Shown: positions 1,492 to 53,440 of the stretch, one piece after another
How the letters are laid out: each line of letters begins with the position of its first letter
Position numbering within the stretch: position 1 is the first letter of the stretch
Sequence record: PV400809.1
Strand: one strand, 5' to 3'
DNA: 64,000 bases
Notes under the pieces: model-generated
What the model was told of the DNA's origin: nothing
Databases searched by the model: none
Seen by the model: the letters and a program-made list of their open reading frames with translations, nothing else
Position numbers and translations under genes: made by a program

Positions 1492-2603
1492 AGGAATTCC
1501 TCCAGGACTTTCAAGGCTTCTTCGTCAGAGATCCCTTCCTTCTCGAAGACCCCTTGACATTCAGGTAACAGGGCTGACGCCAAGTTCTTTTTCGTTAACT
1601 GAGGGTAATCGTACGTTTGGTTATTGAACAGATCGTCTTGAACATGCTGTTCTTTGGCTTTCGCATTCTCCGCTTTAAAGCCAAAGTAGGGGAATTCTTT
1701 CTCAAAGATACGTATAACCGGTTTAACGATATCCGCTGCACCGCCCATGACCCGGATTTGACTGTGGTACGGGAGTTTCTTCCGACGGATGAACTGCTGA
1801 AGGTCCAAGACCAATTGTTCGGTCGTAATGTCTTCCTTGACTTTCAGGGTTAAATACGGGAGGGCGTTCTTATTTTCCTGGAAGGTTGAAGTGGCGGTTT
1901 CCTTCTCCAGGTCAAGCTCAACCAAATACCCCCCTTTCGGGTGTTCTTCCCCGTGGGCTGTACGGTCAAAGGAACCCGAACACCGCATCTTACCCACTTC
2001 AGAGGGGACGTGAATATGACCCGACAGAATGAAGTACTTAACAATGGTTTCCCATCGGGCTAACTGGTGAGCCTTGTGTCGTACTTGCACCGGCAATTGA
2101 TGCTCCCACGCACCATGAAACACAATCAAGTCCACTTGCTTCAGTTTGTGCTCATTGAGCAACGCCACGGTCTTATCCCAAATCTCATCAGGTGTCAGGG
2201 TTCCCATGTTGTCAGGAACACAGAGAATACTGAGATTGTTGAATTGGGGGTAATACTGAATGGACAAAGCATCCACATACCGGAAATCCATTCCCTCGGG
2301 AGCCAGCGTCTCCAAGTGTTTAGGCTGACCCCTGTCGTGGGAGTGGGTTCCTTCCAGTACTAGAACGGCTGTATGAGCCTTGTCGCACGCGTTCAGGTAA
2401 ACCTTGGCCCATTCCTTAAGTTTAATGAAATCAGGGTTAGGGGCCTCTACCATGCGTTCTGTGAGGTCCCCACCAAAGATCGACAGATCGATATTGTTCA
2501 GATCGTGATCTTTAAAGTAAAACGTCGACATATTCCCCAGTACATGAGTAGTGGGGGTTGTCTGGTGCAGCGTGTGGTGGTCGGAAGTCCAAAGAATCCG
2601 CAT
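1488..2603 (-). CDS. SbcD/Mre11-like metallophosphoesterase nuclease
   Basis: Motifs SDHH, GGD, EGTHSHD, FHG, SGHIH. Start reassigned to MRILWTSDHH at 2603, preceded by a GAGGGG RBS. Confidence 0.85.
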   Translation of the reverse strand: MRILWTSDHHTLHQTTPTTHVLGNMSTFYFKDHDLNNIDLSIFGGDLTERMVEAPNPDFIKLKEWAKVYLNACDKAHTAVLVLEGTHSHDRGQPKHLETLAPEGMDFRYVDALSIQYYPQFNNLSILCVPDNMGTLTPDEIWDKTVALLNEHKLKQVDLIVFHGAWEHQLPVQVRHKAHQLARWETIVKYFILSGHIHVPSEVGKMRCSGSFDRTAHGEEHPKGGYLVELDLEKETATSTFQENKNALPYLTLKVKEDITTEQLVLDLQQFIRRKKLPYHSQIRVMGGAADIVKPVIRIFEKEFPYFGFKAENAKAKEQHVQDDLFNNQTYDYPQLTKKNLASALLPECQGVFEKEGISDEEALKVLEEFL

Positions 2604-2625
2604 GAATAGTCTACCCCTCACTACC

Positions 2626-3459
2626 TTAACACGCCAACGGATCGAAGTCGGGATCGTCCGGCGATTCGTTATCCGCCTGTTCACTCGGTGCGTCAGCCAG
2701 ACGGTCTTCAATTTCATAATCTCCTAAACTCAGTTGGTTTAGGAATTTCAACTCATCCTGAGTCAAAGTCTCACCTTTGTGTTCTTTAAAGAACAGCGCC
2801 CGAGCACGAGTCAGGTCATCGGGATTGGTTTCAGTTCCTTTCCGGATAACATCCCGAATCCAGTAAACCTTGCGCTCCACTTCCGGAACGATCGAGAACT
2901 TCTCGAAGAAAGTCGGGGTAATCAAATCCGTCAGGGTCGTGGGTTTAGCTTCCAGACCTATTTTGCTATCCGCCAAGGCATTCGCAACCTTCAAGCTGGC
3001 GTTCAGGTTCTCTTTCTGGCGGTTGTCTTCACTGATATTGTAAATAGCCAGTGAGGCCATCCGGAGCTTGTACCGGTCATCCGCAGTCAGGGAGTTGGAA
3101 ATAATCGGTGGAACCAAGAGGGTCGGTTCGTATTTACCGGTTTCAGCATCCCGGGCGACCACCAATACAGACCGGGTTCCGTTAAAGGTAAAGGAACACC
3201 ATTCCTGGAAGGGGAAGTAGTTCACTCCGGTGGAATTCCCCAGCGCAAAGGGAATCAACCATTTCTGAACGAATTCCTTCTCTTCAATCACATGACTCAC
3301 GTTAAAGGGGAGTTCTTCTCCCGGCTCACCCAGCAGGAGTTTACCATCCAGTTCGTGGACTTTCAAGTCCTTCAACCAACCAAGGTCATTCTCCAGGTGC
3401 ATCTCTTGGATATGATCAGGAACTTTACCCCGGAAGTCTTCGTTGTGTTTGTCAGTCAT
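2626..3459 (-). CDS. Conserved hypothetical protein with acidic C-terminal tail
   Basis: 277-aa ORF within the co-oriented operon. Confidence 0.7.
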   Translation of the reverse strand: MTDKHNEDFRGKVPDHIQEMHLENDLGWLKDLKVHELDGKLLLGEPGEELPFNVSHVIEEKEFVQKWLIPFALGNSTGVNYFPFQEWCSFTFNGTRSVLVVARDAETGKYEPTLLVPPIISNSLTADDRYKLRMASLAIYNISEDNRQKENLNASLKVANALADSKIGLEAKPTTLTDLITPTFFEKFSIVPEVERKVYWIRDVIRKGTETNPDDLTRARALFFKEHKGETLTQDELKFLNQLSLGDYEIEDRLADAPSEQADNESPDDPDFDPLAC

Positions 3460-9885: not shown

Positions 9886-11988
9886 TCAATGTTCATCAGA
9901 AACCAGCCTCGTTACCTTAGCATTTAAGATAAAGAGTCCTAACGCTTCTAGAATCGCATAAATGGATTTTAGGTTATGACTAACGATTCTGCGCTTGTCA
10001 ATAAACGGGATAAACTCTTTAGGGATTCCACCCATTTGATCTATCTGATCGGTGGGGATATAGATGGAACTCAGCTTATCTCGTCCTTTAAGGTGATTCG
10101 TCAACAGGGCTTTATAATTCGGGTCCTCGATGCTGTTAAAGAAGTCCTCCAGTTTCTTCTTACCGGTTAAGGTCAGGTTGATCTTGTAGGCCTTATATGG
10201 CAATGGGGGGGTATCCCCATACTTAGGAGCCAATACCTGGTCCCAGAACAAATGGTTGATGTACCGTTCGTTACTCTCTGGGTCTGTATACGCCGACGGG
10301 TCCTTAACCCCTTCAATCGCTAACCACGCCCAACCCCCTTCTTCCAGGTTGGCAAACAGTTGACGCTCGATGTCAGCCACTTCCCTCAAAATCTTAGGTG
10401 CATCCAGCTTCTCACGGGTGTACAATGCATCCAAGATTTTCCGCATGAGTTTCCCGGTGAACTCCCTCACCAATTCCGCAATCTTGACCCCTCGTAAGTG
10501 AACACCCTTCAAATCCAATTTCGGTTTCTTATTCAAGACCCCTTCCACCATGAGTTGCAACGCAAAGTAGTGTTTCGACATGGAGGTCGTGACATACGAC
10601 GCATACAAGTACTCATTCTTCATGTTCAACCGACGCTCGTACTTCTTAGCCACATTCATGTTGCGACTGAGTTTAGCATGCTGGTCGATCGCAATGTTGC
10701 GGATGAAGAAGGTTAGAACGCCATTGAACCTCAACGAAACCGTAGGGTCAGTCGAGAACTCCTGAATCAGTTGATCCACACTGTAAATACAGGCGTCTGT
10801 ATCAGAGGTCATTACGTTTTCACGAACCAACTCTTTCACGCTGTAAATGTCGGTGGGAGGGATAGAAGATTTGAGGAACGCACTAATGAAGTTCCCCCAG
10901 CGTTTCTCAACCTCCAAGTGATAACCATTCAAGAAGTTGATTTGGGCTTTACTGGACTTTTCCCCAAGCTTGGTTAAACACAGGATGTAATAATCCCCAT
11001 TCAAGGGTTTAGGATAATCCTCTTCCTTAACCCCTTCCGGAAACTCCGGGATATCGCACCATTCCTTAAAGAACCGTTTAATCAGATCTGGGTTGGTGGT
11101 ATACAGCCCTCTCAAATCCTGGGTACAGAGGATAATGGTCAGTTCTAAGGGGGTGAGATCCCTCAAGAACTGTTCAATAGCCCTGAGTTTAACAGGGTTA
11201 TCCCAGTAGTACGCGGTACACCGTCTCACCATGTCCATGACCTGGTCGACCGTGGCGTACGTCATCTCGTACTCATCAATCACCGTTTGGATTAAATCAC
11301 GGTCGGTGAACTGGAGCTGACTGACGAACAGTTCCATCGTCTTGTTGTAAGTTAACAACAAGCGGTTACCGGTAATTAACCGTTCATTGATCAGGTTAGC
11401 CGTACTGGTGAGGGCTCGGCAGGTGCTGGTGAGTGTCGTATGACCGGACTTATTGAACAAAGGGGTACCGGATGACGACATCCCGCCGGATTGAGAATTA
11501 TTAAAGATCTTTAAGGCATTCTGAATTTCATGGAACGCCTTCTCCGCTTCCTCGTCCCCAACGTCTTTAGCGGCTTGTTTCTTACCTTTGTACAACCGAC
11601 GGAACTCAATAAACTCTTCGGTGCCCGCCGCGTTAACAGATTGTTCTTCCTCTGTATTGGTATACGCGACCAAGGATGGGGAGAGGTGCCAGTTGTTCTC
11701 TCGGACCGCGTTAAAGAACTCCCGGGTTCCCATTACCGTCGGGACACGGTCTCCGTACTTGTCTTTCTTAAAGACCCCGAACTTGGCTTCTTTGAACCCA
11801 TTCTCATTCGGTACGAAGACCTTCTCACAAATCTCTAGCAGGTTCTCATAGTCCCACCCATACACAATGGAGAGGTAACGAGCCGCTAAGTAGTGGTACG
11901 CTTTCAGGAAGTTACGATTACTTTCATACGTTTTATCTATAAAGGGTGACTGATAAGGTTCAGTCTCTTGAGTCGCTGGAACATTCAT
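9886..11988 (-). CDS. Family B DNA polymerase, polymerase-domain subunit of the split phiKZ-type enzyme
   Basis: KIFNNSQSGG (KxxxNS motif), SDTD (motif C) and SKHY; no exonuclease motifs apparent. Confidence 0.85.
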   Translation of the reverse strand: MNVPATQETEPYQSPFIDKTYESNRNFLKAYHYLAARYLSIVYGWDYENLLEICEKVFVPNENGFKEAKFGVFKKDKYGDRVPTVMGTREFFNAVRENNWHLSPSLVAYTNTEEEQSVNAAGTEEFIEFRRLYKGKKQAAKDVGDEEAEKAFHEIQNALKIFNNSQSGGMSSSGTPLFNKSGHTTLTSTCRALTSTANLINERLITGNRLLLTYNKTMELFVSQLQFTDRDLIQTVIDEYEMTYATVDQVMDMVRRCTAYYWDNPVKLRAIEQFLRDLTPLELTIILCTQDLRGLYTTNPDLIKRFFKEWCDIPEFPEGVKEEDYPKPLNGDYYILCLTKLGEKSSKAQINFLNGYHLEVEKRWGNFISAFLKSSIPPTDIYSVKELVRENVMTSDTDACIYSVDQLIQEFSTDPTVSLRFNGVLTFFIRNIAIDQHAKLSRNMNVAKKYERRLNMKNEYLYASYVTTSMSKHYFALQLMVEGVLNKKPKLDLKGVHLRGVKIAELVREFTGKLMRKILDALYTREKLDAPKILREVADIERQLFANLEEGGWAWLAIEGVKDPSAYTDPESNERYINHLFWDQVLAPKYGDTPPLPYKAYKINLTLTGKKKLEDFFNSIEDPNYKALLTNHLKGRDKLSSIYIPTDQIDQMGGIPKEFIPFIDKRRIVSHNLKSIYAILEALGLFILNAKVTRLVSDEH

Positions 11989-45726: not shown

Positions 45727-48700
45727 TTATTTACCTCTGTAGAGTTTAATGGCTTGGCGAGTGATCTGGAAACCATACTCATTAGCAACCAGCTTGTTCC
45801 TCAAACTGAGTACCATTCGGTTAAACATCCCTTTAAAGCTCGACTTCACATCAATTACAATCCCACTGGCAGTCTTAAGCGGTCTTTCCATGATACGACC
45901 CACAGTGGCTTTCATCTGGTTCCCAATGACATACTTATCCGCATTGGTACTCGGGTCTAACGACTCGATGTAGAACGTAATGAATGCCTTACCTGGACCT
46001 AACATGGGACGATTAAGATTGAACATCGTGGAAATGGCATTGTTCTCGACACCGGTTCCTTCCACCAACCCTTTCCGTTTCGTTTCCTTATCCTTCTGAA
46101 CAATGAACGAACGGAACGAGTCAGACATCTTGTCTAAGGGAGAGTTGTACCGAACATCGATGTGTACGATCTTTCCATGATGCTTCGAACGGATCTGTTT
46201 GATACCGAGTTTGTTGATGTCTGCTTCGAGCTCAGGAAGCTCCTCGCCCTCCACCAAGTGAGGCTCTTCGATATCACATAAAATCGTGTCCTGTTCGACG
46301 TAATCTCCTACCTTAACCCGCATCACCAGGTTGTTTGACACGTCCTCGGCAAACCGACTGGGTTTAATGAATGGGGTACGTGCTTCCATGGCCAATTCTT
46401 TCGAAATTGCAATAGAGTCCTCGTACACATCCTGGTCTTCCACCATAACGATCTGGCACATCTTACCCATCTTAACCCCGACCTGCCCTGGGCAGAAGGG
46501 GTCTCGACCGAACCAGTTTTCATCCCAGCCGATGACATCTCCCTTACGGAAGGTATCTCCGACCTTCAGATCCGTGGTACGGTTATGAGGATGGTATTCC
46601 CCACTGGCTTCTCCAATCACCAACCCCAAGGGGTACGAGTCCGTTGTTCCATCCTTGTATTCGACGAGTAAGCGATCGTTCTCCACTTTAGTGACCTTAC
46701 CATCTTCAGCGGCTACTTTGCTGTAAAGATCGGAGGTCCGGTGGGCCAGTACGTTCTCGTAACCCGTTCTCAGGGTAACGATCTCGTAGTTCTTAGCCAT
46801 CACTGCTTGAGAGGCCTGAGTCGATGTGAATACTGCTCGCTTCACATCGTCATGCGTTCCACCGTACATCAGGTTCATGGTAACCGAACCGTCACCGGTA
46901 GGGGTACGTTTGTTCTTGGGATCAACATTGCCTCGGAAATCAGCGATACCCGGATCAGAGGTGGTGTAGGTCACATACCCCACTTTACCACTGTCCTTGT
47001 TGGCTTCACTGATGACCCCTTTGTAACTCTCCAGCTGAGTCCGTGCGCGTTTGACCATGGTGATTTCACTACGACCACCTGTTCCACCAAACGTCACTTC
47101 CTCTTGGTCCTTCACTTGGTGAACCGGATTCACTTCTTCCACCAAGTTCGTAGACCGGTCAGTACCAATGGCAATAATAACCGCATCCGGGTTAAAGTCC
47201 AGTTTGTGTTTACGCCCTTTCCCTTTATTCCGGTATTGACGAATGGACTTTACAAATTCCGTGTAGAGATGACCTGCGAAGCGTTCATACCCTACAATGC
47301 GCTGCTCTTCAATCTCCACCTCGTGCCGACTGTAATCCGTTTCCAATGCCTTAGCTGCATCAATCAGCAAGTAATGGAAGTCTTCAGACAGCTTCATCTC
47401 TTTCAAAAGGTCTTTCGTAATGGGATCAATAAAGAGATCGAAGAGGTTCTTCATTTCCTGGAACTGAGATGGACGAACCCGAGGGTCTCCCATCAACGCA
47501 CTCCAGATACTGTTATTATTCAAATCACTCCGACTGAAGTTACTGATGTTGTTCAACTTCGGCATTCCACCAAAGATCAACGTGGTGAGCTTCTCCCGAC
47601 GGTTAAAGATCAAGTATTCGTCATTGAACTGAATCGCGTATTCATCCTCCGTCAATTTAGGGCGAGTCCCTACGGGTACCGAACGCGTCGTGGCTTTAAT
47701 CACCCGCAACAGTTCATCAATACCGAAGTAGAAGCACAGGACCACTCCCAACGGAAACGAATACCCGCTGATGTTAATCACCACGTGTTCCAAAGGCGCT
47801 TTACGAACATCAATACCGAGCAAGTCTTCAACAGTACCGAGTTCCTCTTCCCCTTTGTACAGGTTACCGTAATCATCAATGATCAAAGGTAATCCGTCCT
47901 TTACCCCAATCAAGAACCGATCAGGGCGGGTATAGGCTTTGAACTCAGGGTGGAGTTCCAGGAGATCCTTCAACCGGAAGTCCAATACCAACCCGTCGAC
48001 AGTAATGTACTTGTACTGACGGGCCAGAATGCTGTAAATCCGAGGGGCTTTAAGGGAGCGATCCCAAGTACTGCCTTTAGTGACCGTATACCCTTTCCGT
48101 TTACTCTGGAGGGAGATTTGCTTCACCATGAACGTAGAGAGGTTATCCACCATCTTCGGACTACGACTCACCATGAGCTTACGGTCATAATAGCTCGACA
48201 GCACCACTTCCCGGGGACTGATCTTCCGGAAGGGTTTCTCCCGACGTTGCAGTTGCATGTGTTGCTTAACACCATCAATGACGTAGGTGCCGTCTTTCAG
48301 CACCGTAGGCAGCCGAGTATGTACAGTGACCTGATCACCATTGACTTCGTGCAACTGAATGCTGTGGACCTCGTAACTGCCTTCTACGCTGACGACCTTC
48401 TCACGCCGGTAGTCGTTCATCGCAAAGCCAGCGTTCTGAAGACCCAACACCATTCGACCAATATCCCGGTGTAAAAACTTCTGAGGATATTCGATCTTGA
48501 GGGATTTGGCACGACTCCGCAACATGCTCTCATCCAGTACGGGGAGAAACTCACCTTCAATCTCTCCACCCAGGTCTTTAACCTCTTCGGGTTTAATCTG
48601 AATGAACTCTTCGAACGTTTGACCGTTCTCCATTTCAATGTGTTGATAACGGGTCGCTTTACGCATGAAGAAATCATGTTCAGCTACCGTCAGCGTACCT

Positions 48701-50046
48701 TCCTTAGCCCGCTCCTCTAACGCCCGCTTTACACCACTCTCAGGCGTCTTAAACACATTCTTGTTGGTATTGATCTCGGTTTGGACTTTCTCCACCTCCA
48801 GCAGTTCATCATCTACCGGCGATGTCCACTCTTCAAGATTTGAATCAGCACCTCGTTCTCCCGCTGTGTCTTGCTCTTCGTCATGTGCCTCGCCAGGTCC
48901 TTCACTTCGGCTGAAAACATCAAGGATAGAACCAGCAGGACGATCAGCACGGGGAACCGTGCCCGAGCCAGTATGGTCTCGGGTTTCTGGAAGATTGGAT
49001 GTTTCTTCTTCTTCTTCTCGTGACGTTCCCGCAGCCACTTGGTCAACGGTACCTTTCTCTCCGGCAATTGGGATGACATTTTTCGTTTCCTCTTTAATGA
49101 GTACATTCTCAGGAACGCCTCCACGAGAAAGATTCATCAAAGCCAAATAGAAACGTTTAACCGCATTATGGCGGGTCAATGTCTTCAGACTTTCAAACTC
49201 TTTCCGAGCAGAGGGGTAGGTTTTCTCGTCTTTAGGATTTGTCTCATCTAACCAACCCTTCAACAGCCCCAGTTGTACTACAATGACTTTACTTTGAGAC
49301 GTAAAGAGGATATGCAAATCCTTATACGCCTGGTCAGTGAGTTTACCGAACAAACTGAACGAATACTGGCCAAACAGGAACCCCAGTAGGTCCAACAGCC
49401 AATAGCAGTTCTCAGCCTTCGTACTCTCCAGCATATTGCGCATCAGGACAGGATGGCCGTCCTTAAACCCATCAATAAACCGCCCGTAGTCTTTCTCAAG
49501 CTCAACCAGGGACGGTAGGTTCAACGGCAGGTCAATCCGCATATACTGCCGACGCACCCCTTTCTCGGCTTCTGCATTGATGTTCTCAATGAGCAGGTGC
49601 ATCATGTTGTAGTATTTTTCATAATTCACGAAAATACTCGGACGGTAAACGAACCCCTGAGGAATCATCCCGTAGTTCTTAACGACTAGGACGTTCTCTT
49701 TGTTGTACACCGTGCTGATCTCACGCACCCAGCTGTACATGTAGTGACTCGCCCGGTACGCCTTAACCGCCTTAGGGTAGTCATAGGCGACTGTACGCCC
49801 ATGCCCCATCACCGGCTTATACCCGTCCCTTACAAACTCAATAAAGACCTCTTTAGGGAAGTTACTGATAAACGCTTCACTACTACCCGGTCCCTTTTCA
49901 TTAACCGTCTTCGGTACGAAGTGCAGTAAACTCCCCTTAGGAAGGATCACTTCACCAATACCCAGGACTTTAGGGTTTACAACGTCTTGTTTCTTACGCA
50001 GCACAAAGTGCTTAAAGAACTCGGAATACGTAATTGGATTGCTCAT
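45727..50046 (-). CDS. Virion RNA polymerase beta subunit (phiKZ gp178-like)
   Basis: 1439 aa; beta-like motifs GGTGGRS, KDSGKVG, FRKGDVI, EDSIAIS. Confidence 0.85.
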   Translation of the reverse strand: MSNPITYSEFFKHFVLRKKQDVVNPKVLGIGEVILPKGSLLHFVPKTVNEKGPGSSEAFISNFPKEVFIEFVRDGYKPVMGHGRTVAYDYPKAVKAYRASHYMYSWVREISTVYNKENVLVVKNYGMIPQGFVYRPSIFVNYEKYYNMMHLLIENINAEAEKGVRRQYMRIDLPLNLPSLVELEKDYGRFIDGFKDGHPVLMRNMLESTKAENCYWLLDLLGFLFGQYSFSLFGKLTDQAYKDLHILFTSQSKVIVVQLGLLKGWLDETNPKDEKTYPSARKEFESLKTLTRHNAVKRFYLALMNLSRGGVPENVLIKEETKNVIPIAGEKGTVDQVAAGTSREEEEETSNLPETRDHTGSGTVPRADRPAGSILDVFSRSEGPGEAHDEEQDTAGERGADSNLEEWTSPVDDELLEVEKVQTEINTNKNVFKTPESGVKRALEERAKEGTLTVAEHDFFMRKATRYQHIEMENGQTFEEFIQIKPEEVKDLGGEIEGEFLPVLDESMLRSRAKSLKIEYPQKFLHRDIGRMVLGLQNAGFAMNDYRREKVVSVEGSYEVHSIQLHEVNGDQVTVHTRLPTVLKDGTYVIDGVKQHMQLQRREKPFRKISPREVVLSSYYDRKLMVSRSPKMVDNLSTFMVKQISLQSKRKGYTVTKGSTWDRSLKAPRIYSILARQYKYITVDGLVLDFRLKDLLELHPEFKAYTRPDRFLIGVKDGLPLIIDDYGNLYKGEEELGTVEDLLGIDVRKAPLEHVVINISGYSFPLGVVLCFYFGIDELLRVIKATTRSVPVGTRPKLTEDEYAIQFNDEYLIFNRREKLTTLIFGGMPKLNNISNFSRSDLNNNSIWSALMGDPRVRPSQFQEMKNLFDLFIDPITKDLLKEMKLSEDFHYLLIDAAKALETDYSRHEVEIEEQRIVGYERFAGHLYTEFVKSIRQYRNKGKGRKHKLDFNPDAVIIAIGTDRSTNLVEEVNPVHQVKDQEEVTFGGTGGRSEITMVKRARTQLESYKGVISEANKDSGKVGYVTYTTSDPGIADFRGNVDPKNKRTPTGDGSVTMNLMYGGTHDDVKRAVFTSTQASQAVMAKNYEIVTLRTGYENVLAHRTSDLYSKVAAEDGKVTKVENDRLLVEYKDGTTDSYPLGLVIGEASGEYHPHNRTTDLKVGDTFRKGDVIGWDENWFGRDPFCPGQVGVKMGKMCQIVMVEDQDVYEDSIAISKELAMEARTPFIKPSRFAEDVSNNLVMRVKVGDYVEQDTILCDIEEPHLVEGEELPELEADINKLGIKQIRSKHHGKIVHIDVRYNSPLDKMSDSFRSFIVQKDKETKRKGLVEGTGVENNAISTMFNLNRPMLGPGKAFITFYIESLDPSTNADKYVIGNQMKATVGRIMERPLKTASGIVIDVKSSFKGMFNRMVLSLRNKLVANEYGFQITRQAIKLYRGK

Positions 50047-50225
50047 ACCTCAATATCCTCTAAGCCGCTCGTCGCTGCTTTAAACATAAAGAGAATCGGT
50101 TCATTGATCGGATCATACAAAAACCGACCTGTACCACTGATGTAATACTCCCGTTTCCCAAAGAGTTCGTAGGCCTGTTGTTTGCTGTCTTCCGCTACAA
50201 CAGAATGGCTCGACAATTGGTCGCC
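50043..50225 (-). CDS. Exon 2 of virion RNAP beta' (60 aa; not in ORF track)
   Basis: GDQLSSHSVVAEDSKQQAYELFGKREYYISGTGRFLYDPINEPILFMFKAATSGLEDIEV*; follows the intron terminal G; stop overlaps the beta ATG. Confidence 0.88.
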   Translation of the reverse strand, partial: GDQLSSHSVVAEDSKQQAYELFGKREYYISGTGRFLYDPINEPILFMFKAATSGLEDIEV

Positions 50226-50640
50226 CGCATTGGTCAGTCCATGCTAGGACCCGGCACGCTCAGGTGCCTGCCTGTCTATTAAACAGGGCCAGACTATATC
50301 TTGACCGTAGGGAATAGGTTTATTCCCCCTTAGGTCTCCTCCACTTCCACCCCCTTCCTTGGTAGGTGTACAGGGTCATAACTCCCTTAGTCGTTGAACT
50401 TTACGCGTGGGGTCTAACACCCGGTAGCGTCTTAGCGGCTGATTGTCCCTTGTTTACGACCCTTAGCGTTATTGGTTAGCGTAGGTCAGGTCTGCTGTTC
50501 TTTCTACCTTTCGGTCGCATTCACGCTTACTGTTTCCAGTTACGTTGTAGCCAACAGACTTTTGTGAACTCCCAGCAATTCAGAGGAATACGGTCTAGGA
50601 CTTTCGTGCCTAGCCGGACTAAGTGATGGATATAAACTCG

Positions 50641-51912
50641 TTAACGTGTGAGTTTCTTGAAACGATAACGGGAATGGAGCAACTTACCTTCTCGTGCGCA
50701 AACGATAACGGTACGGGGATTGGCTCCGGTGATTCGGGTAACTGCATCAACGCCATACACAATCGACGTCTCCTGGGTTACCGAATCAAACATTTCATAC
50801 ACAGCTGTAGCAGGGTGCATCTTGCGCCGGATGCATTCCAGTTCGTATTCATTCAAATCAGGCCAAGGGGTCTCGTCAGACTCCCGCTTGAATTGAAGGT
50901 CTTTAAAGGCGGATCTCGGGTTGGTGTTACTCAGGGACGTCAGGATGCCTGTTGTCCCTACCTGTGTTGCTCTAGAGGCCTCCGCCAATGAATTATACAC
51001 CGTGATTTCACCGGTGAAGACATTCCGGGCAAGGATCTTCTTACCCACAGGGGGTTTATAGTCCCAGATCTCTTGGAAGTCACGTTTATCTCCCTCCCGA
51101 CGAAGAACGTACCTGTTCTTGTACACCGAGCGAGGACGTTTGAGCACCAGACCAATACACCAAGAATCCACCTCCATGGTTCTGGCAAACTCATTTTGAC
51201 TGACGTACTTAAAGACTTGACCTAATTCCCTGTCAAAAACCTCCAGGGGATTATTGTCCGCTCTCGCTTCTTGATTGTTGCACGCTTTGAAGGAGTTGTC
51301 CTTAGCGGTAACCCAAATCAAGTTAAAGAGCTTGAAGTTCATCTTGTTACCGTCATTATGATCGACCATTAGCTTGGGGTAGCCCTTAGGCGGCTTACCG
51401 AAGGTCTCCGCCAGTAGCCGGTGGACATACTTGCGTTCATCCCCACTGACCACATCCAGTCGAACAAAGGGGTAGAAACTGTCCACAATGACCTTACCAC
51501 CCAGATACGGTGGGTAAAGATTCTTTCTAAGTGTTCGGTATACCACACCGTCTCGGTTGATTGCGTTGAGTTCAAACCCAGGGATGTAGTAGTACCCAGA
51601 GAGTTCAGGGTAAGGGATGCCCTCTTCAGGATAGACCAAGTAAAGGTTATCCGCTGCAAAGTTTTCTGCATCGTCATCCAGAAAACCTACTTTCACCTGT
51701 TCCCATTCAGAGATAGGAAGGTGGAACTTTCCTTCTCCATGGAGGATCATTAATCCCAGTTTGATCTTAACCAGTTCGTCTCCATCGCCCCGTGCGATGA
51801 AGAACGTGTTCCCGTCTGCCATCCGATGGACCGGAACATCCGTCTTATCAGTGACATTGAAAACTGTGTTGGTTGTAGACAACACGTATTTCTTTCCAAA
51901 ACACGTTAACAT
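50641..51912 (-). CDS. Intron-encoded HNH homing endonuclease with C-terminal NUMOD1-like repeats
   Basis: YVHRLLAETF...VDHNDGNKMN...NLIWVTAKDN; three helix-turn-helix-like repeats; AAGGAG RBS. Confidence 0.88.
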   Translation of the reverse strand: MLTCFGKKYVLSTTNTVFNVTDKTDVPVHRMADGNTFFIARGDGDELVKIKLGLMILHGEGKFHLPISEWEQVKVGFLDDDAENFAADNLYLVYPEEGIPYPELSGYYYIPGFELNAINRDGVVYRTLRKNLYPPYLGGKVIVDSFYPFVRLDVVSGDERKYVHRLLAETFGKPPKGYPKLMVDHNDGNKMNFKLFNLIWVTAKDNSFKACNNQEARADNNPLEVFDRELGQVFKYVSQNEFARTMEVDSWCIGLVLKRPRSVYKNRYVLRREGDKRDFQEIWDYKPPVGKKILARNVFTGEITVYNSLAEASRATQVGTTGILTSLSNTNPRSAFKDLQFKRESDETPWPDLNEYELECIRRKMHPATAVYEMFDSVTQETSIVYGVDAVTRITGANPRTVIVCAREGKLLHSRYRFKKLTR

Positions 51913-51915
51913 CTT

Positions 51916-51967
51916 TACAACTCCTTATGGTCGAATGCGAACACTTCCGCATACAATAGGAGTTGTA
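51916..51967 (-). promoter_or_regulatory. RBS-sequestering hairpin with an internal TATG late-promoter motif
   Basis: TACAACTCCT (51958-51967) is the perfect complement of the RBS arm AGGAGTTGTA (51916-51925); TATG at 51950-51953 lies between them. Confidence 0.7.
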
Positions 51968-51997
51968 TAGTGAGTTTATATCATGCATCACTATCTA

Positions 51998-53440
51998 ATC
52001 ATGGTCACTGTCGAGCAAAGCTTCTCTAGAGGGGTCTACGGACATGGCATCGAAGTAATCGGGATGGACTTCACGTTTAGGGAACCGTTTACAGGTTTCC
52101 CGTACACCCCAATCAATCGGATTACGAATGACCCGCTGACTCGCATTGGTGGTGGTACGTAGGTTAACCTTAGCCGGGAAGATAGAGCCAATTCCCGTAA
52201 TGGGATACCGGGTTTGTCCCGTAATCTGTTCTTCGATGACACTGTGGCAACTCAAGTAGAAGAGTTCCATGTAGGTGATAGGTTTCACCCATTTACGGTC
52301 TTTCCCTTGAGGGAGATCGTTGATGTCATGGAGAACACACACATCAGTCCCATCATCATAAATGAGGGCTAAGTATTTCCACTCAATGACAATGGGTTTA
52401 CTCCGTAGGGAGGGATCAGCAAACCCGTTGAAGAGTTTCATTAACCCGGTGGCGGTGGTCCATTTCTCTACCACTTCAGGGGAGACTTCAGCGTATTCGT
52501 ATTCCAGGGTCTTGGTATTCACCAGCTTAGCGGTTTGAGAGCTGGGGGTGAAGATGTTGGAGAGGTAACCGTTGGTTAACGCATTGATGCAGACATAAGG
52601 GAAGTTCAGTAGGGCTTGGTAGAGCCCCATGTCCGCAGAGTTAGGACCTACACCGTCGTCGAAGTCTAAACGTGTCCTGGAGACTTTACGGGCGGTAATG
52701 ACATTCCGGGTGCTGTTGTGAACCCCCCGGGTGGACATACGACGCTGGAGAACACCCCCTTTCCCTTGGAGTAAACCAAAGAGGTAATTATCCAATTCCA
52801 AGAAAGCATTCTGTACCCCCCACCGAACGGTATCGTAAAGGGGGTTCAGGGCATCTTCCTTATTCCCGAGGATCACCCTCACCCGGAACATTAAGGCGCG
52901 GTAGAATTCAGTGATCTCAGGTTCGGTATGGGAACCATCCGGATTGAATTGGATATCCCTGAGACCCGCGGGGATGACCAGGACCTTATCCGTTAACGCT
53001 GTCTTACGGAATTGGTTCGCCAGTTCTACCCGTTGTTTGCGTTTATGGGAGGGGGTCAGGGAGAAGACAGTTTCATCGAAGTGTTTCAGGAAGAAGGCGA
53101 AACCCTTTTCCCCTTCCAGGATGTTCGATTTTATGAAATCCTTCAATTCGGGATCCCATACCGCGTATTCCGATCCTTTCAAAATTGAATGATACAGACT
53201 TTTGATCTGTATAAGGGCTTTTAGGTAAGTGGGATTGAAGATGGGAAGTTTAACGTCGATATACGCTTCCGTGTTATCGCGTTGTTTACTACCCAGTTTA
53301 CCGAAGATGTCAAGGGAGAAGAGACCATCATCATTGAGGTTCTGAGTCATCCCTTCAAACGAGTCCGTAGACGTAATAGGTTTAAAGACACCCGGAACAA
53401 TCGTCCGGGGGTCTAAGAGGGTAATGTTAGTCGGTTTCAT
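51998..53440 (-). CDS. Exon 1 of virion RNA polymerase beta' (phiKZ gp180-like); spliced product 541 aa
   Basis: beta'-like motifs DGLFSLDIFG, VIPAGLRD, GKGG..RR; ends LLDSDHD at an in-frame TAG that is the first intron codon. Confidence 0.9.

Follow-up and report, generated by a model that had tools for sequence, protein, structure and literature searches.

Homing endonuclease introns in the RNA polymerase (RNAP) genes of jumbo phages have been described before. In phage PhiPA3, the HNH enzyme gp210 nicks the intron-less virion RNA polymerase (vRNAP) gene of phiKZ, giving the carrier a competitive advantage (Birkholz et al., 2024, PMC11620839). A phiKZ intron homologous to the one described here is already in the literature, which describes introns as frequent in the RNAP genes of jumbo phages, and the record of phage EL (AJ697969, 2005) lists ORF185 as a 'putative intron-encoded HNH endonuclease'. 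Here, we analyze the corresponding locus in a 64,000-nucleotide (nt) stretch of sequence record PV400809.1, hereafter the window, which derives from Pseudomonas phage vB_PaeM_GXNNE2 (100% identity), an EL-like phage of the genus Elvirus, Chimalliviridae. It is highly probable that a mobile subgroup IA group I intron with an HNH gene splits the vRNAP beta' gene of this phage at DSDHD|GDQL. The locus has the anatomy of such an element, homologs exist for both of its exons, the intervening RNA has a ribozyme fold with covariation, and its open reading frame (ORF) carries an HNH domain.

The RNAP genes and the intron of GXNNE2 lie on the minus strand. Over the 3.6-kb region analyzed, the window is 100% identical to GXNNE2 and its twin GXNNA8, and its identity to phage EL and a further five Elvirus genomes is 97-98%. 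Exon 1 (53440-51998, minus) is present in the ORF list and encodes the N-terminal part of vRNAP beta' in 481 codons ending in ...EALLDSDHD, directly followed by a TAG stop at 51997-51995. Exon 2 (50225-50043 including TGA, minus) opens at 50225 with GGC GAC CAA TTG (GDQL...) and continues for 60 codons (GDQLSSHSVVAEDSK...LEDIEV). The frame closes with a TGA (50045-50043) that shares bases with the start codon (ATG, 50046) of a downstream gene of 1439 amino acids, the two forming ATGA at 50046-50043. Joining the exons, join(53440..51998, 50225..50046) on the minus strand, gives 481 + 60 = 541 amino acids. Exon 1 contributes the first two Asp residues of the DxDGD motif and exon 2 the Gly, the third Asp, and the C-terminal tail, so that DHDGD is complete solely once the two are joined. 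In multisubunit RNAPs, all three Asp residues of this beta' motif chelate the catalytic Mg2+.

The position of the junction is fixed by homologs. When the two exon products were searched separately against phrog_2986 ('RNA polymerase beta subunit', 539 positions), exon 1 aligned to positions 5-486 (E value 1.8e-192) and the 60-residue exon-2 peptide to positions 487-538 (E value 1.9e-8), leaving no gap after exon 1; this arrangement is far beyond chance, judged from the sequence alignments. Likewise, in an alignment of both pieces (A1) with Erwinia phage RisingSun gp229 (...GSDHDGDALSA...) and Pseudomonas phage OBP_277 (...GDFDGDALSA...), the pieces abut with neither gap nor overlap, and further uninterrupted relatives read through the junction as DSDHDGDQLNSN. 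Among 42 relatives fetched from IMG/VR, 30 have an uninterrupted junction, which in 19 of them is DSDHDGDQL; six more have no insert, the exon-1 probe being unaligned there and the exon-2 match starting right behind the beta' match. The closest intron-less relative is 75% identical. Together, phrog_2986, A1, and the IMG/VR relatives place the junction inside DxDGD, after its second Asp and before its Gly. The exon-2 peptide was found by tblastn in 68 phage records and, outside Elvirus, lies mostly within a single annotated RNAP gene among the matches listed. Shifting either splice site by a single base within the UU or GGG run costs the frame or the motif, and such alternative sites were rejected.

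That the interrupted protein is an N-terminal fragment of a virion-type beta' subunit is supported by sequence comparison. A profile of exon 1 and four homologs matches the beta' chain 7S00_d of the AR9 phage RNAP (2e-7), and exon 1 is a full-length homolog of phiKZ gp180 (32% identity, E value 4e-77). Gene order is as in phiKZ gp181 / gp180 / gp179 / gp178. RefSeq carries the note 'structural head protein' on phiKZ gp180 and gp178, and homologs are annotated as 'virion-associated RNA polymerase beta' subunit'. From orthology and synteny with phiKZ gp180 and the annotations of homologs, the GXNNE2 protein would be located in the virion.

An earlier reading of the window, made from the DNA letters and their ORFs (the sequence-only reading), had proposed most of this gene structure. 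Its coordinates were all correct on the minus strand: the 481-residue ORF, the 1772 nt to the second exon, the terminal G at 50226, the 60 codons, the ATGA overlap, and the 541-residue product. Its contention that exon 2 restores the DxDGD motif agrees exactly with the uninterrupted relatives (GSDHDGDALSA, GDFDGDALSA, and DSDHDGDQL), its expectation that homologous beta' proteins would align to the exon-2 peptide is borne out by phrog_2986 487-538 and by A1, and its assignment of the protein to the virion-type beta' subunits is upheld by the 7S00_d and gp180 matches, the gene order, and the homolog annotations.

The sequence between the exons is a group I intron of 1772 nt in phase 0 (51997-50226, minus), as indicated by the Rfam model RF00028 (Intron_gpI), by covariation, and by the homolog-fixed junction. 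It begins with UAG, the in-frame stop, directly behind U51998 as the last exon base, and ends with the omega-G, G50226, the sole position that restores both the frame and the DGD motif; all eight examined homologous introns of the beta' gene end in G. RF00028 aligns over its full length (model positions 1-253) to 50644-50272 on the minus strand with 46.7 bits (E value 6.9e-10), which is the sole Rfam match of the window. The P, Q, R, and S elements are present as AAUUGCUGGGA, AAUCAGCC, GUUCAACGACUA, and AAGAUAUAGUC, respectively. The ribozyme core (50616-50237, minus) comprises P2 with a GAAA loop, P3, P4, P5 with an extension, P6/6a/6b, P7, P7.1, P7.2, P8, P9, P9.1, and P9.2, with P3 and P7 forming the pseudoknot of the group I core. 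In a hand-built model, P7 is formed by GACUA (50392-50388) and UAGUC (50296-50292) on the minus strand, and two additional minus-strand stems, P7.1 (50387-50384 / 50375-50372) and P7.2 (50368-50365 / 50351-50348), stand between P7 and P3'. Since stems in this position mark subgroup IA, the intron is supported, from its sequence, as a subgroup IA-like group I ribozyme. The P5 extension consists of P5a (50559-50552 / 50497-50490, minus; GUCUGUUG / CAGCAGAC), two GAAA hairpins, and P5c. The sequence-only reading had foreseen several of these features: the P/Q/R/S elements, the exon-terminal U, and the omega-G were all located in the sequence, the covariance-model match fell where it was expected, and the subgroup IA-like stems were not only found but covary.

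Related introns were located by blastn and tblastn in VP4B, FishSpeaker, PDCC-1, Vibrio phage 2 TSL-2019, phiKp_32 (two), and EL (a second intron). In a MAFFT alignment of nine related introns (A3), the P7, R, and S elements are invariant. Paired cells make up 86.9% of the P2-P9.2 model on this alignment, compared with 27-47% in controls in which the 3' strands were displaced by 1-3 columns. Double (compensatory) changes occur in 43 of the 83 pairs, including one of four pairs in P7.1 and three of four in P7.2, and none of 500 shuffles matches any observed measure. As the alignment is out of register at the P5a helix, P5a was compared sequence by sequence, and it is complementary in every member despite differing sequences. 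When IMG/VR was scanned for exact matches to the P2 sequence, EL and VP4B alone were returned. Within Elvirus, a comparison of GXNNE2, EL, and HHBS8_1 yielded 15 variable sites in the 415-nt core, 13 of them unpaired; the remaining two are a G.U to A-U change in P5a and one broken end pair of P3. As about 44% of positions are paired, the binomial probability of at most two helix changes is about 0.013, and the 85-nt 5' part of the intron has no substitutions. By this sequence comparison, the ribozyme helices are under purifying selection within Elvirus.

The P1 helix is formed over a long range. Its 5' strand (52000-51972, minus) is composed of exon GAU (52000-51998) and intron UA, a 3-nt GAU bulge, AGUGAUG (51992-51986), CAU, and GAUAUAAACUC (51982-51972), while its 3' strand (50639-50617, minus), which includes the internal guide sequence, is composed of GAGUUUAUAUC (50639-50629), CAUCACU (50628-50622), and UAGUC (50621-50617). 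The exon-terminal U51998 stands opposite G50619. P1 amounts to 23 base pairs with an energy of -22.2 kcal/mol (RNAduplex), and its distal 11 base pairs, GAUAUAAACUC/GAGUUUAUAUC, are perfect. When every other 24-mer of the intron was scanned, the 3' strand came out as the single best partner (-22.7, where the mean is -7.0 and the standard deviation 2.5). A like architecture, with distal sequences that differ yet remain complementary, is seen in VP4B, Vibrio phage 2 TSL-2019, PDCC-1, phiKp_32, and the second intron of EL; the proximal part is just 3 base pairs in FishSpeaker, and ORF-less relatives have a similar P1 closed by short loops. A local hairpin within the first 40 nt (AUAGUGA/UCACUAU) was considered as an alternative P1 and rejected, as it would leave no guide to pair with the exon, whereas the long-range partner is far stronger and its architecture is conserved.

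The ORF of the intron (51912-50641, minus) encodes an HNH homing endonuclease of 423 amino acids. Because the 3' strand of P1 starts one base past the stop of this ORF, the whole of it lies in the P1 terminal loop. The protein matches Pfam HNH_3 (PF13392) with 42.4 bits against a cut-off of 24.8 (E value 5.3e-11) and phrog_59 (2.9e-46), and its DH...N...N motif can be aligned with residues 46-97 of I-HmuI (1U3E), a nicking endonuclease; its C-terminal half has weak, sub-threshold matches only, to NUMOD1 and group-I-intron-endonuclease. The beta' genes of Raoultella phage VB_ZK_P1, FishSpeaker, Vibrio phage 2 TSL-2019, and PDCC-1 hold homologous ORFs (34-35% identity), and more distant ones are those of Goslar and phiKZ gp179 (26-28% identity). 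A scan of IMG/VR with the intron-ORF alignment returned already known isolates only. The Shine-Dalgarno sequence AGGAG of the endonuclease is covered by a hairpin (51965-51918, minus) in which CAACUCCU and AGGAGUUG pair round an inner AUGCG/CGCAU stem, with a minimum free energy of -22.1 kcal/mol and a z-score of -4.0 (200 shuffles). This predicted burial of the ribosome-binding site suggests translational control of the homing endonuclease.

Applying established group I chemistry to this anatomy, a splicing pathway can be proposed. UAGUC (50621-50617) would pair with exon GAU and intron UA, so that G50619 faces the exon-terminal U. The 51998|51997 bond would be attacked by a guanosine held in P7, and the freed exon would then attack behind the omega-G at 50226. 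The product GAU|GGC would encode the 541-residue beta' fragment with an intact triad, D479, D481, and D483; the predicted ligated junction is GACCAUGAU|GGCGACCAA and the predicted peptide spanning it in the joined protein is EALLDSDHDGDQLSSHSVVAEDSK. On unspliced RNA, translation would end at the UAG and yield a 481-residue product without the third Asp and without the conserved 60-residue tail. This product should be inactive, and therefore the active enzyme should require splicing. The hairpin-buried ribosome-binding site would limit translation of the endonuclease, which, by analogy with PhiPA3 gp210 and I-HmuI, would make nicks in alleles lacking the intron in co-infecting relatives and bring about homing or interference. 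Nuclease activity and a role in phage competition are likewise expected by analogy.

Several points weigh against this account. The RF00028 score is 3.3 bits under the curated Rfam gathering threshold of 50 bits; it is lowered by the long insertions that the intron carries in P5 and from P7 to P3'. Four homologous introns score above the threshold (51.2-53.9 bits). Only three exon bases (GAU) are paired with the guide and a search for a P10 pairing with the 3' exon found none, so that the splice-site definition is weak on paper. We infer splicing in GXNNE2 from its sequence, and the protein would be placed in the virion solely by its homology to phiKZ gp180. A literature search found no usable EL-specific splicing or proteome evidence, and a long-read transcriptome of phiKZ gave no evidence of splicing at the predicted gp56, gp72, and gp179 introns under its conditions (10.1101/2023.10.13.562163). 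These points leave room for protein-assisted or conditional splicing, but do not favor a reading without an intron.

The explanation that fares best beside simple self-splicing is a refinement of it, in which the intron is real but splices inefficiently and either needs a phage or host cofactor or is conditional, thereby acting as a gate on the late virion RNAP. The three exon base pairs in P1, the lack of a P10 in our search, and the missing spliced reads for the homologous phiKZ introns would all fit such an intron, and so would the 1.36-kb ORF, which must loop out before P1 forms. Many group I introns need chaperones, for example StpA or CYT-18. Nevertheless, we consider a requirement of this kind unlikely, since no part of the catalytic core is missing and its conservation is high, with R and S invariant in nine introns, its helices are under purifying selection, and the same core is retained by ORF-less relatives of 380-497 nt; moreover, the related phage IA introns of T4 td and SPO1 self-splice in vitro.

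A far less probable explanation dispenses with splicing, so that the beta' gene would be split into polypeptides of 481 and about 57 residues with a free-standing HNH gene between them. Jumbo-phage RNAP subunits are indeed divided over several genes (PMC7598289), and the fourth codon of exon 2 is a TTG from which a 57-residue protein is annotated in the GXNNE2 record. However, a product started at this TTG would lack the Gly-Asp, which would leave the third catalytic Asp outside any ORF, and in frame upstream of GGC GAC there is no ATG, GTG, or TTG back to a TAG. The gap is also filled exactly by a group I ribozyme that is complete and covaries, with a U at -1 and a terminal G, and the junction is nucleotide-exact against intron-less homologs. 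The least credible explanation is that the intron has decayed and beta' is a pseudogene in the Elvirus lineage, for although the Rfam score is under threshold and the HHBS8_1 record lists exon 1 as two overlapping coding sequences, the exons, ORF, and intron core are kept at 97-100% identity over nine independently isolated, propagating Elvirus phages, the 5' part of the intron is free of substitutions and the helices almost untouched, and the virion RNAP of phiKZ-like phages starts early transcription and is thought essential. Both of these readings were rejected on the ribozyme, junction, and conservation evidence, leaving the intron reading as the preferred one.

Automated annotation fails at this locus, as the sequence-only reading had predicted. 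A joined coding sequence is found in none of the five tabulated Elvirus records nor in the feature lists of the other four, and exon 2 is either missing, as in the EL record, or listed as a small 'hypothetical protein', as in the GXNNE2 and HHBS8_1 records. The claim that exon 2 is unlisted holds for the full 60-codon frame; from the TTG at 50216 onward, it is present as a 57-residue ORF and as a 'hypothetical protein' in the GenBank record. In HHBS8_1 (locus L003, 1561-3004), exon 1 is annotated as two overlapping coding sequences, 1561-2313 and 2192-3004. The overlap implies that the record contains either a frameshift or an error of sequencing. The statement that RNAP introns are known from related jumbo phages was right and, given the EL record, the phiKZ literature, and the RefSeq annotation of Goslar, understated. 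Thus, the finding is an accurate re-derivation and an annotation fix for a kind of element already known. As it stands, all nine public Elvirus genomes, some from phage-therapy screening, carry a truncated 481-residue 'RNA polymerase beta subunit' or a 'hypothetical protein' where a 541-residue beta' fragment, encoded by a join, and an intron feature should be given. The locus also adds another homing-endonuclease intron in the active-site motif of an essential phage enzyme, from which imprecise loss would be lethal.

The gene downstream of exon 2 (45727-50046, minus) encodes an intact vRNAP beta-like protein of 1439 amino acids (phrog_3148, E value 0; homolog of phiKZ gp178, E value 3e-136). 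In EL and six other Elvirus genomes, this beta gene contains a second, ORF-less group I intron of 415 nt after ...GTHDD, which in EL (locus L015, 460-874) scores 40.5 bits with RF00028. In GXNNE2 and GXNNA8, the site is empty at 46846|46845 (minus), after the ...HDD codons, and synonymous differences stand beside it, GTG AAG in these two phages versus GTC AAA in EL. Elvirus, being variable for the second intron, may offer a natural test system for the idea of the intron as a weapon in contests of co-infecting jumbo phages, a role that has been demonstrated for the PhiPA3 counterpart. In Klebsiella phage phiKp_32, a related core (RF00028, 51.3 bits) with an HNH ORF (phrog_59) lies in a different RNAP subunit gene (locus L008, 807-4743), with positions 3-402 of phrog_3295 encoded before the intron and positions 403-696 after it. 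This second intron of phiKp_32 indicates that the intron family colonizes several RNAP genes.

Among relatives, homologous introns occupy the beta' gene at three in-frame positions 6 nt apart, one per Asp codon of the 15-nt DxDGD motif. The -6 site is used by phiKZ (LGAD|FDGD; locus L059, 10346-11786), Goslar (LGGD|FDGD; locus L061, 2320-4365), and Vibrio phage 2 TSL-2019 (LGGD|YDGD; locus L013, 1179-2897). The 0 site is used by Elvirus and phiKp_32 only (the latter at locus L014, 2478-2859). The +6 site (DxDGD|QL) is used by VP4B (locus L007, 3419-3917), FishSpeaker (locus L011, 1090-2892), and Raoultella phage VB_ZK_P1 (locus L060, 2096-3834). Every 5' exon of this staggered set ends in GAU and every intron in G, and in the core-related members the guide keeps GUC, which pairs with those three exon bases only. 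A tree of the ORFs sets phiKZ and Goslar apart from EL, FishSpeaker, Raoultella phage VB_ZK_P1, and Vibrio phage 2 TSL-2019, and this second clade includes all three positions. It is tempting to suppose that one intron-plus-HNH lineage moved between the three positions of the motif, although we hold this to be possible rather than probable. Endonuclease homing puts the new intron copy where the donor has its own, and such shifts would therefore need another route, for which reverse splicing into a neighboring GAU followed by recombination is a hypothetical candidate. Each position destroys the target of the other two, and the variants may thus compete with and exclude one another. No description of the staggered pattern was found in a limited literature search. 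If the positions do represent relocations of a single lineage, the pattern bears on how group I introns reach new sites.

The record of Photobacterium phage PDCC-1 (NC_048821; locus L012, 1179-2900) contains a chimeric intron, which matches Vibrio phage 2 TSL-2019 (-6 site) with full identity in its 5' part and ORF and resembles VP4B (+6 site) in its 3' part. As deposited, the sequence is without the 12 nt encoding YDGD, and the triad is consequently not encodable. The record may be explained by an assembly that collapsed two tandem introns or, alternatively, by the sequencing of a recombinant.

Among known systems, the introns of phiKp_32, VP4B, FishSpeaker, and Vibrio phage 2 TSL-2019 share 67-71% core identity and the same P1/P2 architecture with that of GXNNE2, whereas Raoultella phage VB_ZK_P1 gives a partial core match of 28% only. 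Those of these five phages that have an intron ORF show 30-35% identity to the EL ORF. The beta' intron of phiKp_32 sits at the identical site (GDFD|GDQL), but is 380 nt long and lacks an ORF; that of VP4B is likewise ORF-less, at 497 nt.

The gp180/gp179 region of phiKZ agrees with GXNNE2 in the gene interrupted and in the order of its parts, as an ORF of HNH type, homologous to gp179 (26% identity, E value 2e-17), is located near the intron's 5' end with the core behind it. As in GXNNE2, an unannotated exon 2, here of 61 residues (FDGDTVSFNAV...), ends just before the next gene, gp178 (locus L059, about 10160-10346, minus; NC_004629), and the RefSeq product of gp180 is a 490-residue protein ending in ...LGAD. 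The phiKZ intron differs in that it is inserted 6 nt upstream (LGAD|FDGD) and its ORF is shorter (357 residues); in addition, core similarity at the blastn level was not found and a P2-like hairpin is not evident behind the ORF. In gp205-gp206 of Escherichia phage Goslar, the same gene and motif are interrupted, the ORF is 28% identical, and RefSeq lists a non-coding RNA 'Intron_gpI', with the exons likewise unjoined in the record. The Goslar intron occupies the -6 site (LGGD|FDGD) and measures 2044 nt.

The PhiPA3 gp210 intron resembles that of GXNNE2 in belonging to group I, in carrying a nicking endonuclease of the HNH type, and in its place beside conserved Asp residues of a chimallivirus virion RNAP gene; its nicking of the intron-less allele and the resulting advantage were demonstrated by experiment. 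However, it interrupts the beta gene (the gp178 homolog) after ..HDD, the site occupied by the 415-nt ORF-less intron in EL and empty in GXNNE2. The introns of SPO1/SP82 (I-HmuI) and of T4 td, nrdB, and nrdD have in common with GXNNE2 an insertion at active-site codons of an essential enzyme, a stop codon in frame where the intron begins, and an HNH motif of the I-HmuI type, and the T4 introns have an IA fold with P7.1 and P7.2. They differ from the GXNNE2 intron in that its host gene encodes a multisubunit RNAP and its P5 carries a large extension, and also in the placement of the ORF, which in the T4 introns sits in peripheral loops other than P1 and in GXNNE2 occupies the loop of P1 itself.

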